Sequence record: NC_074634.1
Length of the DNA stretch: 26,097 nt
Direction: 5' to 3' (one strand)
Below, piece by piece: positions 4,675 to 25,631 of this stretch. Position numbers and translations under genes: made by a program. Position 1 is the first letter of the stretch; every line of letters starts with the position of its first letter. A model generated the notes under the pieces. It made no database searches, was not told where the DNA came from, and worked only from the letters and a program-made list of their open reading frames with translations.

Positions 4675-5001
4675 ATGAAAGGTAAATTTGACGATTGGAA
4701 TAAATATAGATCTGACGTTAATAAAATAATACTTGAGTATTTTAACAAAGTCGGTATAATGGCGACAACAAGAGCTTTATACTTCTCATTTGCGCAAAAA
4801 ATATTGGCAATTGTTAGAAAACATCAAGATGAAAGCCTTATCAACAAATTAATTGAGGGAAATATCCAATATTTCGTAACAGCGTTTGATGCAAACGAAA
4901 AAGTATTGCGTGATATTGTAAAAATTATAATTTTAGCTAAAATCGTTAAAATGAACCCAGATGATATACTGAAAGAAGTGCTAACGCAAAAATCCAACTA
5001 A
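4675..5001 (+). CDS. Major capsid protein paralogue (SIRV2 fold, N-terminally shortened)
   Basis: Aligns without gaps to the MCP C-terminal bundle: GIMATTRALYFSFAQKI vs GVTGPSRAIYQGYGLKV, and GNIQYFVTAFDANEKVL vs GLKAYYVSAYGANPEIL. Confidence 0.85.
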   Translation: MKGKFDDWNKYRSDVNKIILEYFNKVGIMATTRALYFSFAQKILAIVRKHQDESLINKLIEGNIQYFVTAFDANEKVLRDIVKIIILAKIVKMNPDDILKEVLTQKSN

Positions 5002-5005
5002 CCAT

Positions 5006-5029
5006 ATACAAAATATTATGTATATGGAT
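5006..5029. promoter_or_regulatory. Degenerate ATTCATA-N10-TATGAAT site upstream of the MCP gene (copy G)
   Basis: ATACAAA-ATATTATGTA-TATGGAT, followed by a TATA-like TTTTTATAA at about 5043-5051 and ATG at 5083. Confidence 0.45.
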
Positions 5030-5082
5030 TTTTTGCATTCAATTTTTATAAGCTATTAATTCTAATATTTAATTGACGAAAA

Positions 5083-5487
5083 ATGGCGAAAGGAAGAACA
5101 CCAAGAAGTTTTTCACAAAGGTATGGTAAATGGAACGCCAAATTTACTGCATTTAGCAATCCGACTGTTGCCAGCACAATATTGACTAATGTTGCCCCAA
5201 TTGCGCAAGGAAACTTCCAAACTAACGTACCTAAATTTACATCAGTTAACGAACAAGTTTCGGCGGTATTGACTCAGTACGGAGTTACCGGTCCTTCTAG
5301 AGCAATATACCAAGGCTACGGTTTGAAAGTCGCAAGAGCTTTAAATAGAATCGGCGCTGGTCCCGCCTTAACAAATATGGTTGCTGGTCTCAAAGCTTAT
5401 TACGTCAGTGCATATGGCGCTAACCCAGAAATACTTGACGCTGTGACTAACATAATCCTAGGATCTCCAACTGGATATGTAAGTTAA
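5083..5487 (+). CDS. mcp: Major capsid protein (134 aa, SIRV2 P134 family)
   Basis: MAKGRTPRSFSQRYGKWNAKF...ILGSPTGYVS is nearly collinear with the SIRV2 MCP sequence as recalled. Confidence 0.99.
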   Translation: MAKGRTPRSFSQRYGKWNAKFTAFSNPTVASTILTNVAPIAQGNFQTNVPKFTSVNEQVSAVLTQYGVTGPSRAIYQGYGLKVARALNRIGAGPALTNMVAGLKAYYVSAYGANPEILDAVTNIILGSPTGYVS

Positions 5488-5500
5488 ATTTTAAAGTCAA

Positions 5501-5526
5501 TTTTCTATTTTTTTCCCTTTCTTTTG
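5501..5526 (+). terminator. Oligo-T terminator after mcp
   Basis: Long pyrimidine/T tract beginning 14 nt after the stop codon. Confidence 0.6.
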
Positions 5527-5567
5527 CAATTGTTTTCTTTAAAAATGTAAACTTTTAACGTTTAATC

Positions 5568-5792
5568 ATGTTTGAGGAATATTTAAAGGAAAAAGGTTTT
5601 GAACCCCATCATATTTCAATTCTTAAAGATTTCTTGATTGAAATAAAAGAAGCATTAAGCATAAATGCTAGGAATTATGAATTAGACGAAATTATAAATT
5701 CTATTGTTGAATATTTTGCAATAACGTATGGATTGAAAAAAGAAGATCTTTATCGATTAATAAATGAGGCAATCCAGGACGGTGTTGTCTAA
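5568..5792 (+). CDS. 74-aa acidic protein; probable third, minimal MCP-fold paralogue
   Basis: Gapless 67-residue alignment to the MCP bundle with 12 identities and a conserved hydrophobic pattern (IVEYFAITYGLKKEDL vs LKAYYVSAYGANPEIL). Confidence 0.65.
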   Translation: MFEEYLKEKGFEPHHISILKDFLIEIKEALSINARNYELDEIINSIVEYFAITYGLKKEDLYRLINEAIQDGVV

Positions 5793-6812
5793 ATGGCAAA
5801 AACACTCATTTTGACTATGGGATATTCTTCAATTAAAAATGTCGCTGAAGATATTGCATCAGTCGTCGGTAATGCAGTGATTGATGTCGAACCAACTTTA
5901 TACGTAAATAACGTCAACAAATTCGATAGACTTATTGTATTTGTCCCATTTACTCCGCCTTTACTGAATAACTACTTGTTAGTTTACAATTATTTTCAGG
6001 GTGAGAAGTATTTCTATACGACAGTTGACGGAAAACCAGTTTTACAAGCCACAAATGAGTATATTGCAAGAAATATAAAGTATATACCAAATTCTCAGTT
6101 TTCAGCTGAAAATCTAAAATCTGCTAATCTTGGTGTTGATATTCCAGTTTTCCATGGGGTAAATTTCGACATAGTGAAAAAAGCAGAACAATTAGTTCCA
6201 AAATTGAGACAGAAACTAGATTTAGACTTTCCAGATAGCATAAAAATTGGAATTGTTACGGGGATGACAAAAAGGAAGAATATCGATTTGTTTGTCGAAA
6301 CAACTCGTTACTTAAATGAAAAAATGCCAGATGTTGCTAAAAATGTTCACTTCTTTGTAATTTCTCATGCAGATTTCCAAAAACTTGAAGTTCCGCAAAA
6401 CGTTCACTTTGTTGCACAGTTTGGTTACCAAAGCAGAGAAAAAGTATTTGCATTTTACGGTTCTATGGATTATGTATTTGTCCCATCTGGATGTGAAGGT
6501 TTTGGTCTCCCAGTCCTTGAGGCAATGGCTATGGGCACGCCGGTTATACACATGGCTATTCCACCGTTCACTGAATTTACATCATGGCAGTGGAACTTTT
6601 TGTTTAAAGATGACGACGTCATAGAATATTACGATAAAGACCGTGGTCAAATATGGAAAATTCATAGATTTAAACCAGAAACTGGGGCATTAGCGATAGC
6701 GACTGCTGTCATGGCAAGTGATAGAGAAGAAAGAAGTCGTCATCTTAAAGATTTAGCTAAAAAATATGATATTAAGTTTTTGTATAAAAGATTTTTAGAG
6801 GGTTTCGAATAA
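5793..6812 (+). CDS. Glycosyltransferase, GT-B fold (GT4-like; SIRV ORF335-like)
   Basis: FVPSGCEGFGLPVLEAMAMGTPVI signature and KRKN nucleotide-sugar-binding motif. Confidence 0.93.
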   Translation: MAKTLILTMGYSSIKNVAEDIASVVGNAVIDVEPTLYVNNVNKFDRLIVFVPFTPPLLNNYLLVYNYFQGEKYFYTTVDGKPVLQATNEYIARNIKYIPNSQFSAENLKSANLGVDIPVFHGVNFDIVKKAEQLVPKLRQKLDLDFPDSIKIGIVTGMTKRKNIDLFVETTRYLNEKMPDVAKNVHFFVISHADFQKLEVPQNVHFVAQFGYQSREKVFAFYGSMDYVFVPSGCEGFGLPVLEAMAMGTPVIHMAIPPFTEFTSWQWNFLFKDDDVIEYYDKDRGQIWKIHRFKPETGALAIATAVMASDREERSRHLKDLAKKYDIKFLYKRFLEGFE

Positions 6813-18967: not shown

Positions 18968-20023
18968 TTGATAATTTACTACGTTTATCCAATGCACCAT
19001 GACGTTAGCTTCAAATTTGTTGCACAAGAACATATCAAAATGCTAAAATCAAAATATACTGTCTACGATATCCCAGAATTGAATTTTTATCAATTTACGC
19101 CATACGGGAAACCGCTGACTTTCATCCACCCTTTTTTCTATGGAATGTTGAATTGGTCTGACATACAATGGTCATTTTTCAAAATGTATAGATCAAAAGT
19201 ATCAAAAGTCATTGGTGTTGAAGTTGCCGACAGTGATAGGATAGCAGAAAAGTACATTGGCATTGCAAATTCCTGGGCTGACACATTAGTTGTAAATTCC
19301 AAATGGTCTTATGACGCTTACATAAATTCATGCTTAAAAATTCCAATTTATATAGTCCCGCACAATTACGATCCAAAACTTGAAGTTGACGATAAGCAAC
19401 TTAAAGTTTCGCCAGAGATCAAAAAAATCGAAGAGATAAAAAACGAAAAAAAGATAAAGATCATCTTATTCTTCTCCTGGCATAGTGCTTACAGAAAGGG
19501 AGACGATTTATTTCAAAAGATAGCAAGACAAATACAAAAAGAAAGAAATGACGTTTACTTTATTGTAAAAAGTGCAACCCCAAGACAAGATTTAATGGAT
19601 TTGAGGCTTTTTAATATAACTGGGGTAATCCCATTTGACGATATCGTCAAACTGTATAGAGTTGCGGATCTTTTGCTTTTGCCGTCAAGAGGCGGATCAT
19701 TTGAGCTTAACGGTCTTGAGGCTTTAGTCTCCGGCATTCCAGTTATTGCGTCAGATGAAGGACCATGGGTTGAATATTTCCCACCGTCACTGAGACATTT
19801 CCTAGCTAAAACTGTAAATCATCCAATCGTTTTACCTAATAATCCAATTCATATTGGCAAAGGTGTAGAAATTTCAGTAGAAGATGCGGTAGAGAAAGCG
19901 CTTAGGATTTTGGACAATATAGAAGAAGAAAAAGCAAAAGTGAGAAATGAAATTGAGTTTTTTCGTAAAAATTATAGTTTTGAAGCAGTAAAAAGAAAAT
20001 TACTTAATGTAGTCGAAAATTGA
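18968..20023 (+). CDS. Glycosyltransferase, GT-B fold (SIRV ORF356-like)
   Basis: YYVYPMHHDVSF N-terminus, RKG, and LPSRGGSFELNGLEALVSGIPVI. Probable TTG start at 18968, 8 nt after GGTG. Confidence 0.92.
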   Translation: MIIYYVYPMHHDVSFKFVAQEHIKMLKSKYTVYDIPELNFYQFTPYGKPLTFIHPFFYGMLNWSDIQWSFFKMYRSKVSKVIGVEVADSDRIAEKYIGIANSWADTLVVNSKWSYDAYINSCLKIPIYIVPHNYDPKLEVDDKQLKVSPEIKKIEEIKNEKKIKIILFFSWHSAYRKGDDLFQKIARQIQKERNDVYFIVKSATPRQDLMDLRLFNITGVIPFDDIVKLYRVADLLLLPSRGGSFELNGLEALVSGIPVIASDEGPWVEYFPPSLRHFLAKTVNHPIVLPNNPIHIGKGVEISVEDAVEKALRILDNIEEEKAKVRNEIEFFRKNYSFEAVKRKLLNVVEN

Positions 20024-20632
20024 TTTATTTTTTTGCATCAAATATTTGTAAATTTCATCAAACATTTTCCTAACTTTATCAGGGTCGTAGAAATATCTGC
20101 GCTTTTCCATGAAATAACCGCCGACATCCAGTGCGGGAAATTGGTATCTTACTACAACTTTGAGATCATTCCAATTTGAAGCCCCCAAATACCATGCTTT
20201 GTCTGGTTCAACTCTCCTAAAAAATTCGGGAAGACTGTAATCGTGAAGTCCAGGTGTTGCTGAGTAACCATAAAAATATTTGAATCCATGCTCTTTCAAT
20301 TGGTCTACAATTTCCAAATCGGGGTCTAATGAATGAATTGGTACAATAAAAATTATCCTACGGAGGACATCCAAATTTGCAATTTTTTCAACTTTTGGTA
20401 AAGGAGTATAATCGGGATATAGCGCAATCTTAATCTCTCTAATTTTTTTAATTAAAAGTTTAACATATTGGACATAAGCATATTGTCCGCCATGAATTAA
20501 AAATTCTTTATCGTCAAAAAATTCTGGATAAATGTACATATTTGGATAGCGAATATTATATTTTCTCATAGTATTAATATGTGGACCTTTCGCCACCCCA
20601 ACTATTGGATAAGTTTGAGACATACCACACAT
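20000..20632 (-). CDS. TIM-barrel protein, TGT/DpdA-like (DUF6610-like)
   Basis: Ordered motifs FFDD, IALYPDY, IFIVPIH, YGYS, WYLGAS and ALDVGG follow the strand-end pattern of TGT-fold proteins. Recognised by eye only. Confidence 0.55.
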   Translation of the reverse strand: MCGMSQTYPIVGVAKGPHINTMRKYNIRYPNMYIYPEFFDDKEFLIHGGQYAYVQYVKLLIKKIREIKIALYPDYTPLPKVEKIANLDVLRRIIFIVPIHSLDPDLEIVDQLKEHGFKYFYGYSATPGLHDYSLPEFFRRVEPDKAWYLGASNWNDLKVVVRYQFPALDVGGYFMEKRRYFYDPDKVRKMFDEIYKYLMQKNKSIFDYIK

Positions 20633-21886
20633 TCACTCTGGCGGTATTTCTTTAAATATTTCATCAAGTTGCACACCTTGCATTTTTCTAATGACGTATG
20701 TCAGTATTCCAACAATTGGCGGTATAAATATCGTTGCAATATCAAAATATAGATTTCCAGTAAACATTTCTGACCTAAATTGTAAATTTGTAAATGAAGA
20801 ATATAAAACCATAGTTGCACTAAAGACCAACACGATTGCAGACAATACCGCAGTCGGCAAAATTCTTCTATCTTCCTTTACAAATTTCAAACTTGCAAAT
20901 GCAACAATTAGATAATTCCAAAATATAAACCATAGGTCATCAACAATCAAACTAACGTGAAAGCCCAGATAATTTTCTACAAAGTTGAAAATTTCTGCAA
21001 TTCCAAAACTAAGTAAAATTGAATTTGTTGGCGTTCCGCCTTTAACATTTGCTAAGAAAGCGGGCAAGACTCTATCAAACGATAGCGCAAACATGACTCT
21101 AGTTGTCGCCCCTGCATTTATCATAGCATATAGCAAATACCATGTTAATGCAGATAATGCAACAATTTCTAATTCTAGATTTACGCCGACTATAACTATT
21201 AAAATTGCAAATATCGCAGTAACGGTATATGCAATAAAATATCCTGCAAGTAAGCTTTTGCCAATTTTTTGCATTTCTCCCGCAAAATATGATGGGGAAT
21301 TTATAAATGCGTAAAGCATCATTACAAAAAGCGCAGTCATAGTGAGAGTATTTGTATTTATCTCAAGTTGTGTAGGTAAAACTGCATGATTTAAATTAGT
21401 CACAATCATAATTATAATACCAAGAATCTGAAATGCCACTAATGCGACAACTGCTTTCGCATAATATTTCACTTTTGACGCTAACAAATAGATTATTCCA
21501 ATATAAACTGTCGTAATTAAGAAAAGATCTAAATTTGACAAATTAAATCGCATAAATTCTAAAGACGCTAGGACTGGCATAGACAACCAAAATGATGTTA
21601 GGACCGCCATACCGCTAATTGTCCCTACAATTCCTCCAAAAGCTCTTGCAACATAAACATAATCTCCAGTAGACCTTGGGATTATTCTGTTCAACAAATA
21701 GTAGTTTAGCATTAGTGGAATACCTAAAATTGTCGCTAAAAGAATTGATAAAAACGCGTTAGCGTGAATGAGAAATAAAACGTAGGAAACTGCCCCCGCA
21801 GGTCCTAAAAAAGCGAAATTTAAGGAAAAAACATCTATTGGCTTAAATTCCTTTATTAACCCAGTTGACTGCCTTAAGAATTTCAT
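20633..21886 (-). CDS. APC-superfamily amino acid/polyamine permease (about 11-12 TM)
   Basis: FLRQSTGLIKEF..FSLNFAFLGP, PRSTGDYVYVARAFG and RVMFALSFDRVLPAFLANV are APC signatures; multiple hydrophobic segments. Confidence 0.9.
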   Translation of the reverse strand: MKFLRQSTGLIKEFKPIDVFSLNFAFLGPAGAVSYVLFLIHANAFLSILLATILGIPLMLNYYLLNRIIPRSTGDYVYVARAFGGIVGTISGMAVLTSFWLSMPVLASLEFMRFNLSNLDLFLITTVYIGIIYLLASKVKYYAKAVVALVAFQILGIIIMIVTNLNHAVLPTQLEINTNTLTMTALFVMMLYAFINSPSYFAGEMQKIGKSLLAGYFIAYTVTAIFAILIVIVGVNLELEIVALSALTWYLLYAMINAGATTRVMFALSFDRVLPAFLANVKGGTPTNSILLSFGIAEIFNFVENYLGFHVSLIVDDLWFIFWNYLIVAFASLKFVKEDRRILPTAVLSAIVLVFSATMVLYSSFTNLQFRSEMFTGNLYFDIATIFIPPIVGILTYVIRKMQGVQLDEIFKEIPPE

Positions 21887-21904
21887 ACCAATTTAACCAA
21901 CCGC

Positions 21905-21921
21905 TGACTACATTTTTAAAT
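21905..21921 (-). promoter_or_regulatory. Conserved TATA-GTC promoter for the permease operon, overlapping the tfb stop codon
   Basis: - strand reads ATTTAAAAATGTAGTCA, about 30 nt upstream of ATG 21886. Confidence 0.65.
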
Positions 21922-22720
21922 TTAAAATTTTTGCATTTTTCCTAAGCCCCGCCCCAGTGACCCCGCATTTTTCTTCAATCATTGGCTGGGTTATAAGGTA
22001 TCCACTTTGTTTAGCTAAATAATATAAAATTGTACATGCAACAGTTTTTGGATTTTTACCCTGGGCTTCAATTTCTTTTGCAATATTAAGCGCTTTTTCA
22101 ATTATCTCAATTGGCAATTCCAGCCTCACTCCACATTCTTTTATATAATCTTCAATTATAAATCGTGGTATTTTTTCATCAAATTCTTTTAATATCCTAA
22201 AATACATACTAACAAATTCCTTTTTTGGGATTCCGAATAATTCATCAACTTTTTTATAATATTCATCAAATGGCATTATAATTTTCAATTTCCTATAAGC
22301 TAAATAAATAGAAACCAAAACAATAATTTCATATCCTAGATATCTTAAATGTTTATTTTTCCATAGCTTTTGTAAAATTCTACCTGCCTCTTGTTTTATT
22401 GCATCATTAGCATTCAATTTTTCAACTGTAGATGATAAAAATCTTAAAGCATGCACTAAAATTCTCTTATTATTTGAATAAATTGCACATTTTTTCATCT
22501 TTTTTGGTTTAATTGCAGTCGTTGGTAGGAAACCTGAATTAACGAAATTGTTTGGGTTTATTGCTTTAGCTCTTGCCCTATCTTCAAACTGCTCAACATT
22601 ATAAGCCCTCCAATCAATACCTTCATCTACAACTCTATCTTCTAGAACTTCTCCAGTTTCAGTGCAAATATATTCGCCTCTCTCTGCATCAAATATGATC
22701 TTATCAGGAGGACAGCTCAT
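21908..22720 (-). CDS. tfb: Transcription initiation factor B homologue
   Basis: N-terminal CPPDKIIFDAERGEYICTETGEVLED..DWRAY closely matches the Sulfolobales TFB1 ribbon/B-reader as recalled; two degenerate cyclin repeats follow. Confidence 0.92.
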   Translation of the reverse strand: MSCPPDKIIFDAERGEYICTETGEVLEDRVVDEGIDWRAYNVEQFEDRARAKAINPNNFVNSGFLPTTAIKPKKMKKCAIYSNNKRILVHALRFLSSTVEKLNANDAIKQEAGRILQKLWKNKHLRYLGYEIIVLVSIYLAYRKLKIIMPFDEYYKKVDELFGIPKKEFVSMYFRILKEFDEKIPRFIIEDYIKECGVRLELPIEIIEKALNIAKEIEAQGKNPKTVACTILYYLAKQSGYLITQPMIEEKCGVTGAGLRKNAKILNLKM

Positions 22721-22782
22721 GAGAAGATCTCAAACCGCCTACATTTTTATTTCTTGCCAAGAACTACAATTTCAAACTTCAT

Positions 22783-23619: not shown

Positions 23620-23644
23620 CTTGATGACAACATTTTTAAATCTT
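23620..23644 (-). promoter_or_regulatory. acrIII-1 promoter, identical to 1252-1276
   Basis: 25/25 match AAGATTTAAAAATGTTGTCATCAAG. Confidence 0.85.
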
Positions 23645-25610: not shown

Positions 25611-25631
25611 ATGACTACATTTTTATATCTT
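25611..25631 (-). promoter_or_regulatory. Conserved TATA-GTC promoter
   Basis: AAGATATAAAAATGTAGTCAT matches the acrIII-1 promoter at 19/21 nt. Confidence 0.75.

Follow-up and report, generated by a model that had tools for sequence, protein, structure and literature searches.

A permease gene and a small TIM-barrel gene of the archaeal virus SSRV1 as a candidate 7-deazaguanine modification cassette

What is the function of ORF28 and ORF29, two adjacent genes on one strand of the Saccharolobus solfataricus rod-shaped virus 1 (SSRV1) genome? The DNA analysed here (the window; 26,097 bp) is the complete genome of this virus, a member of the genus Hoswirudivirus in the family Rudiviridae, and is identical in sequence to MN876841 / NC_074634. 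SSRV1 was described by Baquero et al. (bioRxiv 10.1101/2020.01.16.907410), where the two open reading frames (ORFs) are not discussed. A previous reading of the DNA sequence alone (the sequence-only reading) had regarded them as a permease coupled to an enzyme resembling tRNA guanine transglycosylases (TGTs) and DpdA, a TGT-fold enzyme that inserts 7-deazaguanines into viral DNA. On balance, we favour the view that the two genes form a cassette of the 7-deazaguanine machinery of archaeal mobile elements, in which ORF28 swaps guanine in viral DNA and ORF29 is tied to this step.

Concerning ORF29, the protein is 45% identical, with 100% coverage, to Acidianus permeases (487-489 residues) that carry the domain PF13520 (AA_permease_2), and it matches phrog_8289 with an E value of 3e-148. 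ORF29 itself gave no direct Pfam match, and its orthologues from SIRV2 and SRV score just under the PF13520 cut-off. Searches of virus genomes with tblastn identified the orthologues as SIRV2 ORF399 and SRV ORF419, with further ones in SIRV1-11 and SBRV1, and most rudiviruses have one; the rudiviral permeases are 32-34% identical to ORF29 with ~96% coverage. The SIRV2 permease gene is followed by ORF310 and that of SIRV8 by ORF52, and the SRV permease gene is convergent on ORF294. All three neighbours are labelled queuine tRNA-ribosyltransferase in RefSeq, and Hutinet et al. 2019 (PMC6884629 supplement) place these rudiviral proteins (e.g. NP_666547, YP_009094239) among the DpdA homologues found in 'DpdA-only' viruses. 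Aligned viral permeases served as the query in a scan of IMG/VR, and the resulting 27 loci were searched with hidden Markov models. Leaving ARV2 aside, each of the 25 informative loci (IMG/VR and RefSeq) had a DpdA-like gene immediately beside the permease gene, lying downstream on the same strand in 24, usually with overlapping or abutting ORFs, and convergently in one (SRV). This adjacency spans five rudivirus genera with differing gene order elsewhere. SBRV1 harbours both genes at positions that are not adjacent.

Only in SSRV1 and ARV2 is the slot downstream of the permease gene filled by ORF28. ARV2 is the closest relative of SSRV1, with 82% nucleotide identity and 87-88% identity between the proteins. 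ARV3 and MRV1, which belong to the same genus, lack both the permease gene and ORF28, and their glycosyltransferase and TFB genes are directly convergent. Because both genes are missing together in these two viruses, the permease gene and ORF28 act as a cassette. The overlap of the glycosyltransferase and TFB genes in ARV3 and MRV1 gives the exact boundaries of the two-gene indel. The sequence-only reading had looked to co-occurrence of the two genes across archaeal viruses; this found no support as regards ORF28, which accompanies the permease only in SSRV1 and ARV2, the permease of relatives co-occurring with DpdA. DpdA and the ORF28 family never occurred in one virus record of the phage collection. 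Between SSRV1 and ARV2, the ratio of non-synonymous to synonymous substitution rates (dN/dS) was 0.12 for the permease gene, 0.08 for ORF28 and 0.07 for the adjoining glycosyltransferase gene. Judging from these values, which for the cassette are comparable to that of the glycosyltransferase, both genes are under purifying selection and are working genes.

As the coupling is strict and the pair survives replacement of the enzyme gene, we presume that permease and enzyme share a function. An alternative is that the permease is an auxiliary metabolic gene for the uptake of amino acids or polyamines, and that the adjacency reflects shared history in a variable region of the genome. The cellular APC permeases closest to ORF29 are indeed labelled amino-acid permeases, the host owns a preQ0 pathway, and this permease is missing from STSV1/2, ATV and the plasmids, all of which have DpdA or ORF28. 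This alternative nevertheless leaves the adjacency in 25 of 25 loci, mostly between overlapping or abutting ORFs, without an explanation, as well as the joint gain or loss of the two genes and a pairing that outlived the exchange of the enzyme gene for one that is not orthologous, and we consider it rather improbable.

We next turn to ORF28, for which neither Pfam nor NCBIfam gave a match, and whose PHROG, phrog_17844, is of unknown function. A phmmer search over 1.8 billion representatives retrieved only 27 relatives. With tblastn, family members were located in ARV2, ATV (ORF192) and SMV3. The gene was also detected on 13 plasmids of Sulfolobales, pNOB8 among them, of which five have been typed as conjugative. 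One relative, P0052, is encoded on three contigs from three data sources, each time in the order PP-loop ATPase, DUF5591 protein and ORF28 homologue, with overlapping ORFs. The PP-loop ATPase matches PAPS_reduct with 25.6 bits and QueC with 21.8 bits. The DUF5591 protein matches PF17884 (E 1e-18) and is 35% identical (E 1e-37) to STSV2_16, designated ArcS2 by Cui et al., the gene of which lies after that of DpdA in STSV2. The uncultivated virus-like contig has an ORF28 homologue and an ArcS-core gene in one operon, in the manner of the DpdA-ArcS2 pair of STSV2, a virus with dCDG in its virion DNA; SSRV1, unlike STSV2, has no ArcS-core gene.

A scan of metagenomes provided 42 further loci of the ORF28 family, many on contigs too short to show neighbours. 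QueF-like genes, encoding proteins of 103-112 residues with the catalytic Cys and an E..S.K.YL motif, were present directly downstream of ORF28 homologues in two loci (L061, L082), and a third (L058) displays an ORF28 homologue, a PP-loop ATPase gene and a QueF-like gene as overlapping ORFs in this order. When 149 non-redundant neighbours within 1.6 kb were scanned against Pfam, PAPS_reduct came first (6 matches) and QueF second (3 matches, tied with RHH_1), with one match each to DUF5591 and PF23859 (DpdA). Altogether, 9 of the 32 informative ORF28 lineages have a neighbour of the 7-deazaguanine type. In SSRV1 itself, the only linked gene of this kind is the permease, through its association with DpdA elsewhere. 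The rudiviral permease and ArcS2, which are partners of DpdA independently of each other, stand beside ORF28-family genes with no DpdA nearby. Because of its permease, ArcS2, QueF-like and QueC-like partners, we place the ORF28 family in 7-deazaguanine nucleic-acid modification, and we rate this neighbour evidence as the most decisive line. The role left vacant in the ORF28-family operons is that of the transglycosylase.

Does ORF28 itself resemble a transglycosylase? In the family alignment, F38, D40, L45, Y56, A70, P73, D74, H100 and G122 are invariant, and P36, F39, K42, P98, Y132, W147, G150 and D169 are at least 90% conserved. When the family profile was compared with that of archaeal-virus DpdA using hhalign, scores of 28-32.5 (E 3e-3 to 6e-4) were obtained over 78-86 columns, figures that derive from single comparisons between small alignments. 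Strand 4, the GY/GG strand, WYLG (with LHVLG) and D169 (in DVT, with D181 in DTS of rudiviral DpdA) are paired in this alignment, and we take the motif of D181 to carry the nucleophilic aspartate of TGTs. Column-shuffled DpdA alignments scored 14 on average (standard deviation 2.7, maximum 24.8), and 0 of 80 reached the score of ORF28. Twelve other families, clustered blindly from the same rudiviral loci, scored 11.6-18.1 against the ORF28 profile, and among the 13, DpdA alone exceeded the background. Under the same conditions, the profile of DUF6610 (PF20314), built from HVTV-1 gp69 and 45 relatives, scored 23.5-27 against DpdA, below the ORF28 family. DUF6610 constitutes DpdA4, an archaeal-virus subfamily of DpdA (Cui, Hutinet et al. 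2023). Its own match to ORF28 was marginal (20.8, where unrelated families reached 18.1 at most), with collinearity over 106 columns including the N-terminal motifs.

Six conserved positions are collinear and nearly equally spaced between ORF28 (D40, D74, H100, G122, G150, D169) and rudiviral DpdA (D40, D74, H108, G132, G164, D181), giving a common pattern D..D..P.H..G..LG..D[TV][ST]. In the TGT of Z. mobilis, the catalytic or substrate-binding aspartates are D102, D156 and D280. D40, D74 and D169 of ORF28 each follow a successive strand; hhalign aligns D169 alone. The rudiviral and bicaudaviral DpdAs (SIRV2 ORF310, also gp13; SRV ORF294; STSV2_15) are small proteins, as is ORF28, and in rudiviruses occupy the same slot after an orthologous permease. 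ORF28 differs in being ~100 residues shorter, in lacking the helical C-terminal extension, and in showing no similarity in pairwise or HMMER comparison. DpdA4 has a domain of ~200 residues, no DSGG motif and an N-terminal F-x-D-x-D that resembles FFDDK of ORF28; it differs in being found in haloviruses with full preQ1 synthesis clusters. We regard these results as moderate evidence for a very remote homology between ORF28 and DpdA.

The designation of ORF28 as a TIM-barrel gene in the sequence-only reading agrees with structure prediction. AlphaFold2 produced a model with a pLDDT of 90.7 and a pTM of 0.87, in which DSSP recognized seven beta/alpha units, and Foldseek related it to TIM barrels with a probability of 1.0; the barrel type is generic rather than TGT-specific. 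Conserved polar residues are located just after strands 2, 3, 4, 5, 6 and 7 of the model, on the side that forms the catalytic face in barrels of the TIM type. The family alignment contains no conserved cysteine, and so no zinc-binding CxCxxC...H subdomain as in tRNA TGTs. Since cysteine is also absent from the SIRV2 DpdA and none is conserved in DUF6610, this subdomain does not define viral DpdAs.

A number of results weigh against the assignment. HMMER comparison of ORF28 and the 27 relatives with TGT, DpdA and DUF6610 models gave nothing above threshold, the best value being an E of 0.072 for one member with DUF6610, and BLASTP found no similarity between ORF28 and SIRV2 ORF310 or SRV ORF294. 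The hhalign matches carried an HH probability of just 10-17%, with the C-terminal half aligned and the N-terminal half poorly so. The canonical DSGG motif is absent, ORF28 having FFDDK, which holds D40, where DpdA has VDSGGFQ. For ORF28 and the 27 relatives, Pfam and NCBIfam gave no match, nor was any PDB entry matched by phmmer or by the family profile. With Foldseek, the top PDB matches of the model were KDPG aldolase, thiamin-phosphate synthase (ThiE) and TrpA, with template modelling (TM) scores of 0.40-0.51, and the top 50 in PDB or BFVD included no TGT or DpdA other than a DpdA4 homologue from HCTV-1 at rank 43 in BFVD, where the only good matches were the ARV2 and ATV homologues. On the 13 plasmids and in ATV, the gene stands alone among regulators and hypothetical genes. 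As for the permease, no transporter of the APC family is known to carry 7-deazapurines.

Some of these negatives are tempered by controls. The accepted rudiviral DpdA likewise has no Pfam match (E <= 0.1), and its profile finds no TGT in PDB; as it fails the same test, negative HMMER results mean little at this distance. The low HH probabilities are due in part to the thinness of the alignments. In a structural control, AlphaFold2 modelled the SIRV2 DpdA from a 10-sequence alignment with a pLDDT of only 54, and the Foldseek search of this model returned no TGT; because this control failed, a negative outcome of the fold test is to be read with caution for viral DpdAs of minimal size. The TGT likeness proposed for the gene in the sequence-only reading therefore stands in part: the barrel, the aspartates at strand ends and DpdA as the sole profile match above background support it, while HMMER, Foldseek and the missing DSGG do not. 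No refutation test that we ran overturned its main idea. Taking the neighbour evidence together with these comparisons, ORF28 is very probably an undescribed DpdA-like 7-deazaguanine modification enzyme.

A further complication comes from one of the metagenomic loci, L080. A gene at 1337-2071 encodes a 245-residue protein with the motifs IDSGV, TMPDYP, IHVFGLK and DSFDS, which hhalign matched to rudiviral DpdA (E 3.6e-4) and to DUF6610 (E 2.8e-3). By indirect assignment, it is probably the neighbour that matched PF23859; two candidate neighbours searched against PDB for this match gave no result. The protein may be a bridging mini-DpdA. An ORF28 homologue is encoded 1.2 kb away, a point that also counts against ORF28 as the transglycosylase, and because both occur in L080 the ORF28 family and DpdA are not strictly alternatives. 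ORF28 might instead be an accessory barrel enzyme of 7-deazaguanine metabolism, for example one that acts on an imported base or nucleoside ahead of its use or tailors the base once inserted, with insertion performed by the host ArcTGT or another protein. Besides L080, the missing DSGG, the lack of a specific TGT likeness in Foldseek and the phosphate-binding barrels among the top structural neighbours (KDPG aldolase, ThiE, TrpA, RPE) fit such a role. It is made improbable, in our view, by the absence of any other DpdA or TGT gene from SSRV1, ARV2, ATV and the 16-22 kb PP-loop/ArcS-core/ORF28 contigs, by the location of ORF28 in the exact DpdA slot beside the permease, and by the fact that its sole profile match above background is the catalytic C-terminal half of DpdA. 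Very unlikely, finally, is a plasmid or virus maintenance enzyme (e.g. a nuclease or phosphoesterase barrel) brought next to the permease through fortuitous recombination with a bicaudavirus or conjugative plasmid: most family members do reside on conjugative plasmids by HTH/pRN-type regulators, or in ATV by a ParB-like gene and a transposase, and no curated family matches ORF28, but the recurrent QueF-like, ArcS-core and PP-loop ATPase partners and the specific hhalign match to DpdA would be hard to explain.

Returning to the DpdA-like interpretation, we propose the following mechanism. ORF29 and ORF28 would be co-transcribed from a viral promoter of the TATA/GTC type. ORF28 would be a minimal (beta/alpha) barrel enzyme in which Asp40, Asp74, His100 and Asp169 each lie where a successive strand has its C-terminal end. 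Homologous to rudiviral DpdA at a very great distance, or at least replacing it functionally, it would exchange guanine for a 7-deazaguanine base in viral DNA or, less likely, in tRNA. ORF29 would be a secondary transporter derived from a cellular APC permease of the Acidianus type, trimmed of two loops and tied functionally to the transglycosylase step, most likely by supplying the infected cell with a 7-deazapurine base or precursor from outside. The absence of preQ0 synthesis genes, already noted in the sequence-only reading, was borne out: phmmer with FolE, QueC, QueD, QueE, QueF, ArcS-core, PP-loop and DpdA queries detected nothing in the window (E <= 1). As SSRV1 has no synthesis genes, the base would be imported via ORF29 or drawn from the archaeosine pathway of the host. 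The statement of the sequence-only reading that Sulfolobales make preQ0 and archaeosine agrees with the literature, in which Sulfolobi carry the archaeosine pathway (PMC6884629). The production of preQ0 by Sulfolobus hosts (PMC6884629) is a further point against our proposal, as import is then not obviously needed. The data show the fold, the conservation, the synteny with its displacement and the family context; we infer that bases are exchanged, which base is used, what is transported and in which direction, and whether DNA or tRNA is the target. The permease substrate is the weakest link of the model.

Transporter genes coupled to guanine transglycosylase genes are also a feature of queuosine-precursor salvage in bacteria (YhhQ/QPTR, QrtT/QueT, and validated UPS, MFS and HlyIII members). 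Clustering of transporter and TGT genes predicted three validated preQ0/preQ1 transporters of unrelated families, and many transporter families can be recruited for this salvage (PMC11130926). The system described here differs in its APC transporter (PF13520), its occurrence in an archaeal virus and its likely DNA target. ORF29 does not belong to the known 7-deazapurine transporter families (YhhQ/QPTR COG1738, QrtT/QueT), and if it carries a 7-deazapurine, it would represent a new type of transporter for that substrate.

The origin of the permease was examined with a maximum-likelihood tree, in which the SSRV1 and ARV2 proteins group with the SIRV clade (support 80/92), nested among cellular sequences of the Acidianus type, and the SRV permease forms a long, unplaced branch. 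The simplest reading is a single ancient capture of the permease by rudiviruses. The cellular permeases of A. hospitalis W1 and A. infernus have a C-terminal IFKEIPPE motif in common with ORF29, and the A. hospitalis W1 gene has no DpdA-like or ORF28-like neighbour. Compared with their cellular homologues, the viral permeases share two deletions of about 25 and 40 alignment columns, which are the sole gaps when ORF29 is aligned end to end with these homologues; a rough hydropathy count aimed at the twelve-helix LeuT-type core was unreliable. The deletions fall at alignment columns ~129-166 and ~315-365 (ORF29 residues ~112-116 and ~232-238). The segments without a counterpart in the viral proteins are probably loops, and their loss may have altered the gating or substrate range of the viral permeases.

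7-Deazaguanine DNA modification is an anti-restriction strategy of phages, and its reach in Crenarchaeota is barely charted. DpdA and its subfamilies (bDpdA, DpdA1-4), ArcS2 and QueF-like genes of viruses are already known, as is the rudiviral DpdA from a supplementary list, and published work has left open the base source of 'DpdA-only' archaeal viruses such as STSV2. In the searchable literature, we found no account of the ORF28 family as DpdA-like, no mention of a conserved permease-DpdA pair in Rudiviridae and no APC-type candidate for 7-deazapurine transport. If our proposal is true, a 'hypothetical' family (phrog_17844, ATV ORF192, the gene of pNOB8-type plasmids) becomes a marker of modified DNA in Sulfolobales mobile elements, the strictly conserved rudiviral permease-DpdA pair supplies a testable candidate among archaeal proteins for 7-deazapurine transport, and SSRV1/ARV2, SIRV2 and ARV3/MRV1 provide a naturally occurring series of replacement and deletion among viruses that can be cultivated with their hosts. 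Likewise, if the family is a DpdA analogue, plasmids of the pNOB8 type may modify their own DNA. More tentatively, the ORF28 family could constitute a further, unrecognised DpdA-type subfamily, which would act as DNA guanine transglycosylase on conjugative plasmids of Sulfolobales, in the bicaudaviruses ATV and SMV3, in two rudiviruses and in numerous uncultivated elements of Crenarchaeota. The rudiviral APC permease would then be the first 7-deazapurine importer from archaea and the first of the APC type, and would provide 'DpdA-only' viruses with their base.

The features of the locus are listed in Table 1.

Table 1. Coordinates of the cassette and flanking features in the SSRV1 genome
Feature	Position	Strand	Description
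ORF29	20633-21886	-	417 aa, APC-superfamily permease; GenBank label 'putative amino acid transporter'
ORF28 ('ORF210')	20000-20632	-	small TIM barrel, family without a name; candidate guanine transglycosylase resembling DpdA
Gene junction	20623-20635	-	permease TGA 20635-20633; first ATG 20632-20630; conserved ATG 20625-20623
Promoter-like 15-mer TTTAAAAATGTAGTC	21906-21920	-	TATA-like box then GTC; predicted function
T-rich tract TTTTCTTTTT	19990-19999	-	follows the ORF28 stop immediately; lies within the convergent glycosyltransferase gene, at its 3' end
TFB homologue	21908-22720	-	Zn-ribbon and one TFIIB repeat; virus-encoded, directly upstream of the cassette
Glycosyltransferase gene	18992-20023	+	convergent with ORF28; 3' ends overlap by 24 nt (20000-20023)
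Copies resembling TTTAAAAATGTAGTC	1256-1270, 5538-5552, 22737-22751, 23626-23640, 25613-25627		16-45 nt upstream of ORF05, ORF12, TFB, ORF33, ORF36

According to the sequence-only reading, the permease stop directly abuts the start of ORF28. Its coordinates and the contact of TGA and ATG are right, the upstream ATG at 20632 giving a 210-residue version that ends at 20000, but the conserved start is likely 9 nt later. GenBank (MN876841) starts ORF28, a 'hypothetical protein' of 207 residues, at 20623 (span 20000-20623), and the corresponding junction in ARV2 consists of TAA, 9 nt and ATG. Because ARV2 does not retain the abutting ATG in frame, the true start is probably 20623, with a 9-nt spacer after the permease stop. 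With either start, the two genes are tightly coupled on one strand.

The dedicated conserved promoter claimed for the pair found support as a recurring promoter-like motif of the virus. TTTAAAAATGTAGTC is placed upstream of the permease ATG, at a distance of 20-34 nt, and reaches into the final codons of the TFB gene, whose stop it also covers; the intergenic space upstream of the permease is only 21 bases. Its core TTTAAAAATGTA is conserved in ARV2, and the motif recurs with at most one mismatch, on the correct strand, 29-45 nt upstream of the starts of ORF05, ORF33 and ORF36. Across the genome, by contrast, its count at up to three mismatches (8) was not above that in shuffled sequences (4.7). 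The motif looks like a genome-wide viral promoter signature consisting of a TATA box and GTC. At the other end of the unit, TTTTCTTTTT is a possible archaeal terminator. The TFB gene is much more divergent between SSRV1 and ARV2 than the adjoining genes, with 63% amino-acid identity and a dN/dS of 0.23.

Other observations concern relatives of the cassette genes. A 508-residue relative of ORF28, P0055, was considered as an informative fusion and dropped, as it showed only sub-threshold PLDc and DprA_WH fragments and had no contig on record. The pNOB8 homologue is located at 4998-5750 (L007), and plasmid members of the family usually lie just downstream of small regulators of the helix-turn-helix (HTH)/MarR type; no conserved partner was found downstream of them, the three ORFs examined being mutually unrelated. 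A TFIIB-domain gene is present on the uncultivated PP-loop/ArcS-core/ORF28 contig (L046 536-1432). In SBRV1, a PAPS-reductase-like protein is encoded ~2 kb from DpdA (1-419 of its locus), and this class is the commonest among the neighbours of ORF28 homologues. ATV ORF192 (L008 4992-5570) adjoins the ParB-like gene ORF326b (5590-6570), and gene 1 of the mycobacteriophages Knocker, Rinkes and Funsized, labelled ParB-like nuclease domain protein, contains a DUF6610/DpdA4-like region. The bacterial DpdA partner DpdB is also ParB-like, and there may be a recurring link between DpdA and ParB.

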